This document shows positions 26,869 to 42,849 of a stretch of 64,000 nucleotides of DNA, piece after piece (the first letter of the stretch is position 1; every line of letters begins with the position of its first letter). Both the position numbers and the translations under genes were made by a program. The stretch covers positions 248,001 through 312,000 of the IMG/VR virus record IMGVR_UViG_3300017917_003143; one strand, written 5' to 3'. Below the pieces are notes generated by a model, which was given only the letters and a program-made list of their open reading frames with translations, did no database searches and was not told where the DNA came from.

Positions 26869-28628
26869 TACAAATAAAAGACTTGACCGTTAAAAACTTT
26901 ATGAGTGTGGGCAATGCCACACAAGCCATCAACTTTGATCGTAGAGACCTCACGCTGGTCCTGGGCGAAAACCTTGACCTGGGTGGTGACGGTAGTAGGA
27001 ATGGCACGGGTAAAACTACTATTATCAATGCCTTGAGCTATGCCCTGTATGGGCAGGCCCTGACCAACATCCGTCGAGACAATCTCATCAACAAGACCAA
27101 TGGCAAAGCTATGCTGGTTTCTTTGGATTTCAACATCAACGGCAAGGACTACAGGATCGAGCGAGGGCGTAAACCCAATGTGCTAAAGTTCTATGTCAAC
27201 AATGAAGAACAAGCCGCAGATGACAACAGCCAGGGCGACAGTCGTGAAACACAGGATGCCATCGAGTCTGCGCTGGGTATGAGTCACGACATGTTCAAAC
27301 ATGTGCTGGCCTTGAACACATACACAGAACCTTTCTTGAGTTTGAAAGCTAATGATCAACGAGCCATAATTGAACAGCTCTTAGGCATCACTTTGCTTTC
27401 AGAACGTGCTGAACGCATCAAGGAACTCAACAGAGAAACCAAAGATGCCATCACGCAAGAAGAGATGCGTATCCGAGCTGTACAAGAAGCCAACAAACGC
27501 ATAGAGGAGCAGATTGAAAATCTCAAGAGGCGCCAAACACTATGGATTTCCAAGCAAACGGAAGACGTTGAAAAACTTGAAAAAGCCATTGAAGATCTCA
27601 AGGCGATTGATATTGAAGCGGAAATACAGGCGCACCGCGATCATGCCACGTGGGACCAAAAAAGGAAAGACTTCAACGACTTACAGAGTGCGCTTTCCCG
27701 TGCTAAACTCGAGCGTGATCGCGAAGATAAAACCATTAAAAAGGTTGCATCAGAGATTACGTCACTTGAAAACCATACCTGCCATACGTGCGGTCAAGCG
27801 TTCCACGACCATAAGCACCAACAAGTGTTGGAAAAAAAGCAGAAGGAGTTGGCAGATGCTCGAGAGGCAAGCCAGCAACATAGCACCACAGTATCAGACT
27901 TGGAGACTGCCATCGCCTCCCTGGGCGAGATAGGTAAGCCGCCCAAAATGTTCTATGATCAAGAAAGCGATGCCATAGAACATCGTGCCAACTTGGCTGC
28001 TTTGGAAAAGCAGTTGGAAAGCAAAAAAATTGAAACCGATCCCTATGGTGAGCAGATCGAAGAAATGTCTGGACAAGCCTTGCAAACAGTGAGTTATGAC
28101 ACACTCAACGAACTCACACGTCTGCAAGAGCATCAGGACTTTTTGCTCAAGCTACTCACCAACAAAGATTCGTTTATTCGTAAGAAAATCATCGAACAGA
28201 ATCTTAGCTATCTGAACTCAAGACTCACACACTATCTTGACAGGATCGGATTGCCTCATCAGGTTATCTTCCAAAACGATCTTACTGTGGAGATCACTGA
28301 ACTGGGTCGAGATCTTGATTTTGATAATCTGAGCAGAGGTGAACGCAATCGTTTGATACTAAGTATGTCGTGGGCTTTTAGAGATGTCTGGGAGAGCCTA
28401 TATCATCCAATCAACGTGCTGTTCATTGACGAGCTTGTGGATTCTGGTATGGATACACAGGGCGTTGAAAACTCCTTGGCATTGCTTAAGAAAATGAGTC
28501 GTGAACGACACAAGAGCATTTGGCTGGTAAGTCATAGAGACGAGCTGGCTGGACGAGTAGAAAACATACTCAAAGTTGTGAAAGAAAACGGGTTTACCAG
28601 TTATAACACAGATGTAGAAATTTCATGA
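26865..28628 (+). CDS. gp46: Recombination ATPase subunit (Rad50/SbcC-like)
   Basis: Walker A GSRNGTGKTT, coiled coil with a CHTC zinc hook, signature LSRGE and Walker B LFIDE. Confidence 0.93.
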   Translation: MIQIKDLTVKNFMSVGNATQAINFDRRDLTLVLGENLDLGGDGSRNGTGKTTIINALSYALYGQALTNIRRDNLINKTNGKAMLVSLDFNINGKDYRIERGRKPNVLKFYVNNEEQAADDNSQGDSRETQDAIESALGMSHDMFKHVLALNTYTEPFLSLKANDQRAIIEQLLGITLLSERAERIKELNRETKDAITQEEMRIRAVQEANKRIEEQIENLKRRQTLWISKQTEDVEKLEKAIEDLKAIDIEAEIQAHRDHATWDQKRKDFNDLQSALSRAKLERDREDKTIKKVASEITSLENHTCHTCGQAFHDHKHQQVLEKKQKELADAREASQQHSTTVSDLETAIASLGEIGKPPKMFYDQESDAIEHRANLAALEKQLESKKIETDPYGEQIEEMSGQALQTVSYDTLNELTRLQEHQDFLLKLLTNKDSFIRKKIIEQNLSYLNSRLTHYLDRIGLPHQVIFQNDLTVEITELGRDLDFDNLSRGERNRLILSMSWAFRDVWESLYHPINVLFIDELVDSGMDTQGVENSLALLKKMSRERHKSIWLVSHRDELAGRVENILKVVKENGFTSYNTDVEIS

Positions 28629-28658
28629 TCACGAGCAGAATATGATAAACAATAGCTC

Positions 28659-29093
28659 ATGTCATGGCTTTTCGAATCTCAAGAAATTACGGAACTACCC
28701 GAAGATTGCGTTGGTTTTGTTTATTTGATCACTAATAAACTGACCGGCAGGAAATATATTGGCAAAAAACTTGCAAAATTTAAGCGAACAACATACAAAG
28801 TAGTCAAACTCAAAAACGGCAACAAGAAACGCAAAAAAATTCGTGGCAAAATAGATTCAGATTGGCAAACATATTATGGCAGTTCTCCGGAGTTATCTCG
28901 AGATGTTGAACTGTTAGGCTCACAAAACTTCTCACGCGAAATCTTATACTACTGTAGGTCCAAGGCTGAATGTAGCTATATCGAAGCTCGCGAACAATTT
29001 TCCCGACGTGTATTAGAATCAGATGATTACTACAACGGGCACATACAAGTGCGTGTACATGGTAGTCATATCAAAGGCAAGATCGCTCAGTAA
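28659..29093 (+). CDS. Stand-alone GIY-YIG nuclease-domain protein (Seg-like family) with a basic insertion
   Basis: GFVYLITNKLTGRKYIG motif, a later Glu (YIEARE) and Asn (YYNG); 144 aa with no separate C-terminal DNA-binding domain. Confidence 0.8.
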   Translation: MSWLFESQEITELPEDCVGFVYLITNKLTGRKYIGKKLAKFKRTTYKVVKLKNGNKKRKKIRGKIDSDWQTYYGSSPELSRDVELLGSQNFSREILYYCRSKAECSYIEAREQFSRRVLESDDYYNGHIQVRVHGSHIKGKIAQ

Positions 29094-29460
29094 AGACTCG
29101 CACAGGTCAATATCGTGTGCCGAACAGTAGAAACCTGGACCCAAGGTCGCAGGGATCCGAAGCCTCGTCGCTGAAACGAGCACTCAATCAGTATCCTTGA
29201 CAGGACCACGATCGCAAATGCCTGCGGTTTGATTGTTTGAATAGAATATAAAGGGAAAAAGACGTAGCAGTGATGCTACACGTCAACATAATATGTTAGC
29301 GTATGTTATGTTGGCCGCCGTTGTGATAAAGACACAGCTCGAGGTACCGGACAACCGCCTCTGTAATGCTGTAACGCTAAGTGACTGTTCGTACTCGGAT
29401 GATGACACCTCTTTGCCCTGTGCGGGCAAAGTGTGACCATAGTATCTGGATGATAACTGT
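29094..29460 (+). ncRNA. Candidate large structured non-coding RNA (strand inferred, family unknown)
   Basis: Part of a 447-nt gap between convergent genes. About ten hairpins visible by eye, including a three-way junction and a GNRA-capped stem; no U-tracts; no credible ORF. Confidence 0.55.
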
Positions 29461-29531
29461 TTCGCTTCGCTCATCTCTTAATAATACATTCATGAGCGAC
29501 AGCGAAATGAATAGAACTTCGTAGAAGTTCT
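29461..29531. other. Cluster of inverted repeats with GNA/GNNA DNA mini-hairpin motifs; possible origin or ssDNA signal
   Basis: TTCGCTTCGCTCAT (29461-74) pairs with ATGAGCGACAGCGAA (29492-506). GCGAAGC on the minus strand (29464-70), GCGACAGC on the plus strand (29496-503), AGAACTTC-GTA-GAAGTTCT (29513-31). Confidence 0.4.
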
Positions 29532-29540
29532 CAAAGTGTG

Positions 29541-29876
29541 TTATAGATTAGTATCTGGCCAATCACGGAACAGTGCGTGTTGTATATCGCCAGCAACGAA
29601 CTGATTGAATGACTTGTGTTTCTGTTCGAGTTCTCCTTCGAGTGGAGCAACACGACGGAATGCCTGATCCATTTGGCCCATGTTCCGGAACTCCATGAGT
29701 ATCATCCATTCTGGCATGTCAGCTATACTACGGAAGCCCATCTTGCAACGAGTAATCCTGTAGCTTTCCATCTTGCCCTCAGAAACTAAGTGATCAAAGA
29801 AGCTTTTCATGCCCGTGACCCAGTCTATGTCGCTGATGTCACCTTCTTTGTTGGCCCATATAGTGTAAATGTCCAT
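29541..29876 (-). CDS. Small alpha/beta-barrel-like protein, DUF6614-like
   Basis: 111 aa; the pattern FFDHLVSEGKMESYRITRCKMGF...ILMEFRNMGQMDQAF resembles DUF6614 (from recall); TAATG overlap with the upstream gene. Confidence 0.5.
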   Translation of the reverse strand: MDIYTIWANKEGDISDIDWVTGMKSFFDHLVSEGKMESYRITRCKMGFRSIADMPEWMILMEFRNMGQMDQAFRRVAPLEGELEQKHKSFNQFVAGDIQHALFRDWPDTNL

Positions 29877-30316
29877 TATGTCATCGGTCCTAAAATTTCA
29901 AATCCATCTATCTCTTTCTTGTAGAGATGTGCTTGCTCGAGATAGAGATAGTCAAACCCCCGGGCTTTGTAGATAGCACACTCTGTTTTCATTGTTTCAA
30001 TGCCCAGTCTTGCTCGAGGATCGTGATAGGTCCAAGCAAATTGGGCACATTCGGCATTGCGATCATCATAGCGTTTGATCAAGCTGAATGCTACCATGCG
30101 TCCTTGGTCAAAATATCCAATCACATCAGTCATTGGATCAGTGTAGCGACTACGGAACATAGGCATCACACTTGCAAAGTGTTTGTAGATGCAATAAGTC
30201 CTGTAGATCTCGTCCAGCTCGACCATCTGCTCTTCAGTGGGTATGAGGTATCCCCATTCCACTGTTGGCTCGTAATTGGTTTTTGCCAAGTTAATCCTTG
30301 CAAATTGATAGCTCAC
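29876..30316 (-). CDS. ATE_C/Bpt-like aminoacyl-tRNA-protein transferase domain protein (GNAT/FemABX fold)
   Basis: IYRTYCIYKH, GRMVAFS, RLG, GFDYLYL and YK..E.L align by eye to the bacterial Bpt C-domain consensus LYxxYxxxRH...GKLVAV...SLG...GLPYLYLG...YK. Confidence 0.6.
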   Translation of the reverse strand: MSYQFARINLAKTNYEPTVEWGYLIPTEEQMVELDEIYRTYCIYKHFASVMPMFRSRYTDPMTDVIGYFDQGRMVAFSLIKRYDDRNAECAQFAWTYHDPRARLGIETMKTECAIYKARGFDYLYLEQAHLYKKEIDGFEILGPMT

Positions 30317-41920: not shown

Positions 41921-42000
41921 TCAACGTAATAATGCGTTTTATGCGGATACCACCGCGTAGTGGCTAGAACCCACATCGGACTTCTATAAGGAGAAAACAA

Positions 42001-42849
42001 ATGGGACGTTCTCTCAAAATCCAAAAATACGGTGCCGCTCAAGGTATCACATATCCAAACAACACTTCTGCTAACACACCAGCAGCCGCTGTGCCAGTTG
42101 ATCAAGGTTATCCTCAGTTCAGTCAGTTGACTGATCCTGTGTATTATTCTTCGCTGACAGCATCTAACTTCTATGGTGTCGTTGGTGGTAATAGAACAAC
42201 TGCAACAACTACAACATTCCCTGTTGTTAAATGCGCGGTCAACATTGCTCTTCCAGATGGTTCAGGCCAAGGGGTTGAAGACGGCGTTATTTTACGCCAA
42301 AAAGGTGCTCACAAATATCTTGTCATGAGCAGTGGTCAAGACGTACAAGACGAAGACATGGTTGTTGGAGCTTCTTACTACATCAAAACTTTGGATACAA
42401 CTAACTGGCAACAAATGGGTGCTCCAGTGGGCGCACAAGTTGGCACAATCTTTACCTGCACAGCACTGTGCGCCAATCCACAAAACGGTGTTGGTTATTT
42501 GGTAGGCCAATGTGTTCTAACCAGTGACTTGACTCCAGGACCTGGCTTGATGGCTATCAGCTATGCAGTTGGTGGTGACTCAACCGAAGTCGCTGTTTCC
42601 AAGTTGACCAACAAGTTCTTACAAAACTGGGATAACTTCCAGAATGCTGCCGGTACTTCATTAGACAGCTATGCTGGCACAGGTAACAACGTAGGTGAAG
42701 TCAATTACTCAGGTGAGACCACTTATCTGGCCAACTTCTTCACTGACGATGCAGGCGCACAAGCAACCAAGTCTGGTGCTGATGCCGCAACATTCAGCAA
42801 CGGTACAGGCGATATTGAATTGGCACAAGTCGAGAAGTTTACTTCTTAA
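42001..42849 (+). CDS. Structural protein, function unknown (282 aa)
   Basis: Strong AAGGAG Shine-Dalgarno, own late promoter and terminator-like hairpin; T/G/A/N-rich. Confidence 0.7.
   Translation: MGRSLKIQKYGAAQGITYPNNTSANTPAAAVPVDQGYPQFSQLTDPVYYSSLTASNFYGVVGGNRTTATTTTFPVVKCAVNIALPDGSGQGVEDGVILRQKGAHKYLVMSSGQDVQDEDMVVGASYYIKTLDTTNWQQMGAPVGAQVGTIFTCTALCANPQNGVGYLVGQCVLTSDLTPGPGLMAISYAVGGDSTEVAVSKLTNKFLQNWDNFQNAAGTSLDSYAGTGNNVGEVNYSGETTYLANFFTDDAGAQATKSGADAATFSNGTGDIELAQVEKFTS

Follow-up and report, generated by a model that had tools for sequence, protein, structure and literature searches.

What fills the one long gap in an otherwise gene-packed stretch of phage DNA, and is it a genetic unit of its own or an appendage of the gene in front of it? 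In the window (the whole stretch of DNA that was analysed, 64 kb in length), the region 29094-29540 is the longest gap without an open reading frame of at least 70 amino acids on a crude ORF map, with 447 nt against 202 nt for the second longest. The description of this region as the only long intergenic stretch, given in an earlier note made from the letters alone, therefore holds. As that note had also said, the element begins directly after the stop codon of a GIY-YIG gene; on its other side lies a gene that runs towards it:

28659..29093, plus strand: SegE-type GIY-YIG domain-only protein of 144 aa (Pfam PF19835, E 1e-33, whole profile; PHROG 447)
29541..29876, minus strand: DUF6614 gene, the convergent downstream neighbour (Pfam PF20319, E 5e-22)

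Genes resembling gp47 and gp46/Rad50 are found further upstream and a T4 baseplate gene further downstream, which identifies the window as part of a T4-like phage. The gene 3' of the element varies among relatives, and many related loci have a baseplate gene at this place instead of DUF6614.

In IMG/VR the GIY-YIG protein has over 600 relatives, and an 18-nt core of the element is matched exactly more than 120 times. By using BLASTN, 29094-29540 was matched in 174 of 199 fetched viral loci, at 65-94% identity and usually over the whole query, and the conservation profile shows no fall until about 29535, with peaks at 29344-29363, 29424-29433 and 29444-29453. The same program found no match for 28600-29900 in 50,697 cultured phage records. 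From the viral loci an alignment of 89 IMG/VR sequences, mutually less than 90% identical, was built (A1). Across 97 hand-defined pairs in A1, 91% of the cells are canonical, a share that falls to 36-42% once the 3' partner is shifted by one; 68 of these pairs have double (compensatory) changes. RNAalifold on the same alignment gave 64 pairs, 45 of them with compensatory changes; mutual information recovered the RNAalifold pairs, three pseudoknots that lie beyond nested folds and a lone long-range pair, 29122:29158. G-U cells number 511 against 183 A-C cells, which marks the plus strand as the RNA strand, and folding against shuffles gave z values of -3.8 on the plus and -2.8 on the minus strand. 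The element is a strand-specific, pseudoknotted non-coding RNA of about 440 nt, at about 29094-29531 on the plus strand. The earlier proposal of a large structured non-coding RNA on this strand is confirmed by the covariation and the G-U excess. The end proposed for it, placed at 29460 for a length of about 370 nt, has to be moved, since conservation and covariation reach to about 29531.

To which family does this RNA belong? A cmscan search with gathering thresholds placed the Rfam family RF01718, Polynucleobacter-1, at 29095-29238 (plus strand) with 92.2 bits against a gathering score of 37 (E 1.9e-18), the match covering model positions 1-141 of 141 and thus the 5' 144 nt of the element. 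Helices P1-P6 of the model are 85-100% canonical in the 89 sequences, with one to five double-change pairs per helix, and seven divergent phage and bacterial loci score 69-110 bits. The element is almost certainly a structured RNA of the Polynucleobacter-1 family. Some 300 nt (29239-29531) lie outside the Rfam model and form an extension, the full RNA being about three times longer than the model. The earlier note had been unable to assign the RNA to a known class, which is overturned for the first third by this full-length match. It had asked for an Rfam scan and had written that a strong hit to a described family would remove the novelty; the novelty is thereby lost for the 5' third and kept for the 3' part of about 300 nt, which is unmodelled. 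It was correct that the RNA is neither a tRNA, a tmRNA nor a recognisable group I/II intron: ARAGORN found no tRNA or tmRNA in the whole 64-kb window, and the covariance models of introns (group I/II) and of ribozymes gave no match at E <= 10 in 28900-29700. A permissive Rfam scan of that region added only cow-rumen-2 (RF02947) at 29282-29383 (21.9 bits, E 0.16), with which the element shares a UUAGC-loop hairpin, GCCGCC and a hairpin with an ...ACC... loop; the score is however far under the gathering score of 66, the match is absent from seven other members at E <= 5, and the kinship is weak, serving as a lead only. Elsewhere in the window, 41922-42003 (plus strand) is a full-length match to the Rfam family RF02980, freshwater-2 RNA (75.6 bits, gathering score 49.9), which ends in AAGGAGAAAACAAATG and hence looks like a 5' leader with Shine-Dalgarno sequence and start codon.

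The Polynucleobacter-1 motif was described by Weinberg and others, whose supplement reports it from environmental samples and Polynucleobacter, with a 3' half that is sometimes undetected, with most examples downstream of the gene family GOS11034 (possible homologue in cyanophage P-SSM2, locus 218) and with no copy in any purified phage (Weinberg et al., 2010; PMC2864571). In the raw alignment of that study, GOS scaffolds carry unmodelled 3' flanks that match 29239-29360 of the window (PMC2864571). The phage RNAs of the window type have upstream a SegE-like gene with about 400 cyanophage homologues, whose equivalence to GOS11034 is putative. No literature on the Polynucleobacter-1 RNA after the 2010 description was found. 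The present element shares with RF01718 its helices, its range (freshwater and Burkholderiales) and its place downstream of a conserved phage-like gene. It differs in that the Rfam model ends at 141 nt, whereas here about 300 nt follow, with three further pseudoknotted or long-range pairings and a duplicated module, and in lying inside T4-like phage genomes, whereas the 2010 paper had none in purified phage. Among other RNAs of this kind, GOLLD and ROOL are large, ornate, pseudoknotted non-coding RNAs of phages and prophages, found on mobile elements; the element here is likewise large, pseudoknotted and borne by mobile elements, but it has no sequence or model match to either.

The RNA consists of two halves, namely the 5' domain that Rfam models and a 3' half in which a pseudoknotted core (P8-P10, PK2 and PK3) is followed by an internally duplicated module. 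Its parts are:

29094..29238, plus strand: 5' domain, the RF01718 motif, with P1 and PK1, P2, P3 and the three-way junction P4/P5/P6 (cmscan)
29095-97:29106-08, plus strand: pseudoknot PK1 (mutual information)
29239..29262, plus strand: conserved A-rich single-stranded linker GAAnAGAAT...AAAGGnAAAAAGA (column conservation 0.68-0.88, no predicted pairs)
29263..29280, plus strand: P7 hairpin, with variable stem and GNRA or A-rich loop (3.7 pair types per pair; double changes in 4 of 6)
29282..29315, plus strand: P8 hairpin of 13 bp (all 13 pairs with double changes)
29295-29301 with 29375-29381, plus strand: PK2, the P8 loop TTAGCGT with ACGCTAA (double changes in 6 of 7 pairs)
29316..29372, plus strand: core, the most conserved part, with GCCGCC, PK3, P9 (ACAGC/GCTGT) and the P10 hairpin GAGG-TACCGGACAACCG-CCTC; conservation is 0.93-0.95 at 29344-29363
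29320-24 with 29351-55, plus strand: PK3, GTTGT with ACAAC of the P10 loop (99% canonical; variants GTCAT/ATGAC and GTCGT/ACGAC)
29377..29408, plus strand: module A, which ends in box A, ACTC followed by X (29397-29403, GGATGAT)
29411..29431, plus strand: P11 hairpin CTTTGCCC/GGGCAAAG, between the boxes (93% canonical)
29427..29459, plus strand: module B, a diverged duplicate of module A, which ends in box B, ATCT followed by X (29448-29454, GGATGAT)
29461..29512, plus strand: P12/P12b hairpins, TTTCGCTTCGCTC...GAGCGACAGCGAAA and ATTCA/TGAAT (conserved and covarying; the alignment is gappy here)
29513..29531, plus strand: P13 hairpin, probably the 3' end of the RNA (double changes in 6 of 7 pairs; terminator-like on the minus strand, for the convergent genes)

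Most of the stems that had been read from the single sequence are supported by covariation in the 89 relatives, namely GCACA/TGTGC (P1), CCTGGACC/GGTC-G-CAGG (P2), CTCGT/ACGAG (P3), the three-way junction closed by CAATCA/TGATTG with its two inner hairpins (P4-P6), GTAGCA/TGCTAC (P7), the long stem 29282-29315 (P8), GAGG/CCTC (P10) and the P11 stem between the boxes. One has to be replaced: for GTTGTG/CACAGC, covariation pairs GTTGT with ACAAC of the P10 loop (PK3) and ACAGC with GCTGT (P9). The inner CGG/CCG pairing of P10 is invariant across relatives. The view that none of the stems is a terminator is probably right, with one reservation: terminator scoring picks out on the plus strand only P6 (29210-29229), P13 being picked on the minus strand only. 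P6 followed by TTTGATTGTTTG (29210-29240, plus strand) scores as terminator-like right where the Rfam model ends and overlaps the 3' strand of P4, so that the two could be alternative structures; the U-tract after P6 is absent from bacterial copies of the RNA.

Variation in length was also seen at two places. At the equivalent of about 29367, between the P10 hairpin and the 3' strand of P9, several relatives (L189, L199, L147, L148, L126, L141, L161, L085 and others) have an insertion of 20-60 nt made of TATAG/TTATAG repeat units and capable of forming hairpins, and other relatives have short GNRA-capped hairpins there, which gives the appearance of a variable expansion site. L184 alone has a 37-nt insertion with hairpin potential in the otherwise conserved A-rich linker (equivalent of about 29250).

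The most peculiar property of the 3' half resides in its two boxes. Module A (...AAGUGAC-N6-A-CUC-X) and module B (...AAAGUGUGAC-N6-A-UCU-X), with P11 between them, form an old internal duplication. The 7-mer X has 10 haplotypes in A1, and the X of box A equals that of box B in all 89 sequences. On a tree built without the module columns, X changed its haplotype at least 33 times, every change being mirrored in both boxes, with 17, 3, 0, 0, 6, 0 and 11 changes at the successive positions. The three bases immediately 5' of X never vary within a box and are not the same in the two (CUC in A, UCU in B); at the base 3' of X, box A mostly has G and box B mostly A. Mirrored change of X between flanks that are fixed and different argues against gene conversion and for selection on identity, and the two boxes are thus constrained to remain identical. 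Parallel change is also seen in a few other columns of the two modules, and both boxes are unpaired in the RNAalifold consensus of A1.

The same arrangement is found in the relatives outside A1. The spacing of the boxes is 51 nt in the A1 phage clade and 58-78 nt in bacterial RNAs, which read GAACUC-X and GAAUCU-X with X being AGCGAAA, AUCGAAA, AGAGAAA, GGAGAAA, ACCAAAA or AUCAAAA (a few copies match at 6 of 7 positions only). In a third, phage-borne type X is GUGUCAAGU, and in L244 one X base is lost in both boxes. A hairpin homologous to P11 is present in the bacterial and third-type RNAs, and the bacterial copies have 3' hairpins homologous to the P12-P13 region of the phages, including a GAGCGAnnAGCGAAA element homologous to P12. 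In bacterial RNAs with X = AGCGAAA (for example L213 and L227), this heptamer is found four times per RNA, also in the P10 loop and the 3' strand of P12, and P12 of the phages keeps AGCGAAA too; the recurrence is independent of the X haplotype and is probably a coincidence.

What the boxes could be was approached through several known systems, each of which was set aside. In the A1 clade X, taken in the GIY-YIG reading frame, is NNA + URA, a sense codon followed by UGA or UAA, and two identical short sequences about 50 nt apart around a stable hairpin resemble the take-off and landing sites of T4 gene 60. A bypass of this type is, however, contradicted by in-frame stops upstream, with no open reading frame entering box A, by bacterial and third-type X sequences without a stop codon and by a spacing that varies (58-78 nt elsewhere). 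GGA sites of the CsrA type fail, as 36 of the 89 phage sequences have AGA and GGA is absent from bacterial X. Pairing of the anticodon-loop or T-box kind would be in inconsistent registers among the three RNA types, and an ordinary antiparallel duplex of box A with box B would have mismatches in A-variants. In the third RNA type, X of L246 can be paired perfectly with the 3' strand of P4, and in L244 this pairing shows no covariation.

A partner for X was sought in cis by several routes, all of which were negative. Neither exact reverse-complement searches nor searches tolerant of G-U found a complement of X in the RNA or within 4 kb on either side. In permutation tests, no 30-nt window of the RNA complemented its own X better than it did other haplotypes, and no 60-nt window of the upstream gene, on either strand, favoured its own X; in a scan of the whole 64-kb window X was not enriched and had no partner. 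The only recurring complementary site, a U-rich stretch at 29232-38, never varies and hence cannot explain the identity of the boxes.

Does the RNA belong to the gene beside it? A pattern scan of one genome per GTDB species gave 40 bacterial loci, in Polynucleobacter, Limnohabitans, other freshwater Burkholderiales and a few MAGs labelled otherwise, with two copies in some genomes. At none of these 40 loci was a relative of any window protein found, the GIY-YIG protein included. In 35 of the 40, a DUF6641 gene stands divergent to the bacterial RNA; full-length tyrosine integrases are found nearby in 12, and in 17 the RNA is followed, about 290 nt further downstream and on the same strand, by a catalytic-domain-only tyrosine recombinase of 188 aa. 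Two bacterial loci are interrupted by IS elements. Such surroundings (DUF6641, integrases, recombinase, IS) indicate that the bacterial copies reside in integrative or otherwise mobile DNA; tRNA genes had no consistent presence near them. A weak sigma-70-like site precedes the RNA in L241, between the RNA and the divergent DUF6641 gene. Moreover, on the 75-kb contig L246 an RNA with the bacterial type of 5' domain stands in the T4-like order gp46 - GIY-YIG - RNA - baseplate; a bacterial sequence type inside a T4-like phage shows exchange between phages and host elements. The RNA is therefore its own genetic unit, independent of the GIY-YIG gene and present both in phages and in bacterial mobile elements.

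Further details of the bacterial loci were noted. Past the 188-aa recombinase lies a three-gene block (two genes without a Pfam match and an AAA ATPase) at +1.4 to +4 kb from the RNA, whose orientation in L206, L207, L229 and L241 is opposite to that in L212 and L214, which suggests an invertible or rearranged segment; inverted repeats around it, considered as sites of the small recombinase, were in no case consistent across loci. L209, L210 and L238 keep the 5' domain and lack the conserved 3' core, L210 adjoining an IS (rve) insertion, and this fits the remark of 2010 on a 3' half that is sometimes undetected. The DUF6641 protein (PHROG 31551; L236:337-780 and 34 other loci) gave a confident predicted model (pLDDT 84), in which a long helix is combined with a sheet of five strands and, at the C-terminus, a helical hairpin. 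No PDB structure matched this model at E <= 0.001, and no named relative was found in the Atlas; DUF6641 and DUF6614 are not similar to each other.

In phages the GIY-YIG gene is nonetheless the conserved neighbour of the RNA. In every phage locus with enough upstream sequence, the RNA comes after the gene on the same strand, normally 5-45 nt past the stop codon. The gene is present in every related locus, while the genes between gp46 and the GIY-YIG gene vary, likewise those past the RNA, and its protein keeps an identity of 70-95% even where that of gp46 and gp47 drops to 55-59%. This presence and conservation make it a core gene of the clade and not a sporadic homing endonuclease. When compared with homing endonucleases of the Seg type, the 144-aa protein was found to have the catalytic domain (PF19835) and to lack both the sporadic spread and the C-terminal DNA-binding domain, being a GIY-YIG catalytic domain only. 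The link is not obligatory, and a functional partnership of gene and RNA is only a candidate. In six loci about 800-1050 nt separate the two, the interval containing a 341-aa ORF without a Pfam match in L001 and a methyltransferase-like ORF in L010. About 550 cultured phages, for the most part T4-like cyanophages, have a homologue of the protein; in three of them, Melnitz, ACP17 and S-SSM7, RF01718 was absent near the homologue by Rfam, the next gene following at once. GIY-YIG proteins that are 92% identical go with different X, which is indecisive in both directions as to whether the protein determines X. As a separate observation, this family (PHROG 447, 'T4-LIKE GC 213') is widely labelled 'NAD synthetase' in cyanophages, which appears to be a propagated misnomer.

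The reading preferred here, for which the odds are about even, is that of an autonomous non-coding RNA of mobile elements, belonging to the Polynucleobacter-1 family, which would work in trans, as a scaffold on which a single kind of partner finds two identical sites. In phages it would be transcribed by read-through from the upstream gene, and in bacteria its own promoter is probable. Once made, it would act as a folded scaffold displaying the unpaired boxes (A)CUC-X and (A)UCU-X with a hairpin between them, in which X, of 7-8 nt, would be free to differ among lineages and held identical in both boxes. The boxes may bind two copies of one partner or a single partner with two-fold symmetry, either a nucleic acid seed present twice or a protein, and the outcome would be a bivalent decoy, sponge or adaptor RNA of mobile elements. 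This mechanism of bivalent binding through the two boxes is a tentative proposal with the odds against it. A protein partner would need many changes of specificity, and a nucleic-acid partner should be findable and was not found in the window and the few kb searched per locus, both of which count against it. That nearly all phage loci have the RNA within 5-45 nt of the GIY-YIG stop would fit a role in cis equally well.

Such a role, as a 3' UTR element of the GIY-YIG mRNA that would stabilise, process or regulate it and have no function of its own, is unlikely as a whole. In its favour are the close position of the RNA behind the gene on the same strand, the fact that a sigma-70-like promoter was not found before the RNA on the plus strand of the window locus, and the same association with a gene in the 2010 study (PMC2864571). 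These points are outweighed by the bacterial copies, which lack the gene and stand divergent from DUF6641 with a promoter-like site between, by the six loci in which other ORFs separate gene and RNA, and by the wide occurrence of the protein in cultured phages, with three examined cases lacking the RNA. A fold of 440 nt with three pseudoknots also far exceeds the needs of a stabiliser.

Two other uses of the boxes, taken together, are improbable: they might be recognition segments of the adjoining enzymes that consist of a catalytic domain only, or they might join in a parallel helix of box A with box B made of like pairs (G-G, A-A, U-U). The latter would explain both the identity kept in register and the mirrored indel.

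As a full explanation, the idea that the RNA is the targeting subunit of the adjoining enzyme (the GIY-YIG protein in phages, the 188-aa recombinase or DUF6641 in bacteria), with the boxes as guides or core-matching segments, is very doubtful. The bridge RNA of IS110 and the omega RNA of IscB/TnpB (HEARO) are structured RNAs that adjoin a mobile-element enzyme and carry short, variable segments for recognition. The RNA here resembles them in adjoining a mobile-element enzyme and in its short variable segments, and differs from them in that there is no homology, no DEDD, RuvC or TnpB protein and no target found, and in that the neighbouring genes vary. It speaks for guiding that both neighbouring enzymes lack a recognisable DNA-binding domain, that the element resides in mobile DNA and that X has the length of a seed or recombination overlap (7-8 nt), varies with the lineage and is matched within the RNA. 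Against this, the GIY-YIG family occurs widely where the RNA is absent, only 17 of 40 bacterial loci have the small recombinase, at a distance of about 290 nt, and no match of X or its complement that could be a target was found in the regions searched; furthermore, no GIY-YIG enzyme or tyrosine recombinase is known to be RNA-guided.

It is highly improbable that the function lies at the level of DNA, with the boxes serving an origin, a packaging site or an attachment site as its iterons or recombination cores. Concerted direct repeats are typical of iterons and of the overlap regions of tyrosine recombinases, integrase genes lie near the bacterial copies, and the spacing in phages is 51 bp. 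Such a site is hard to reconcile with RNA-type, strand-specific covariation across the whole element (the G-U and A-C counts given above), with a spacing of 58 to 78 bp in bacteria, with fixed, box-specific bases 5' of X, which argue against gene conversion or simple repeats, and with lytic T4-like phages that have no integrase near the element.

That the RNA is a remnant or cargo of a homing-endonuclease cassette, either a degenerate group I intron or the conserved target of the endonuclease, can be dismissed as scarcely credible: although the family of the neighbouring protein is annotated as homing endonucleases and the Seg enzymes of T4 adjoin conserved RNA genes, the gene is found in every related locus and is conserved above gp46/gp47, unlike a sporadic homing endonuclease, no intron family matched at E 10, and in bacteria the RNA occurs without the gene.

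The present analysis adds to a catalogued family a phage context, a threefold longer architecture and a pair of boxes that change in concert. Polynucleobacter-1 has been an orphan motif since 2010, and the present data make its function testable: the motif is now firmly placed in T4-like freshwater phages and in integrative elements of their likely hosts, and 89 phage and 33 bacterial sequences with strong covariation suffice for an improved model. The identity of two boxes kept through 33 changes without a complementary partner is an unusual constraint. If the boxes were guides, the RNA would belong to a new class of RNA-guided mobile-element enzyme, and if they formed a parallel-stranded helix of like with like, this would be unprecedented in natural RNA. 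In either of these cases the significance would reach well past this group of phages.
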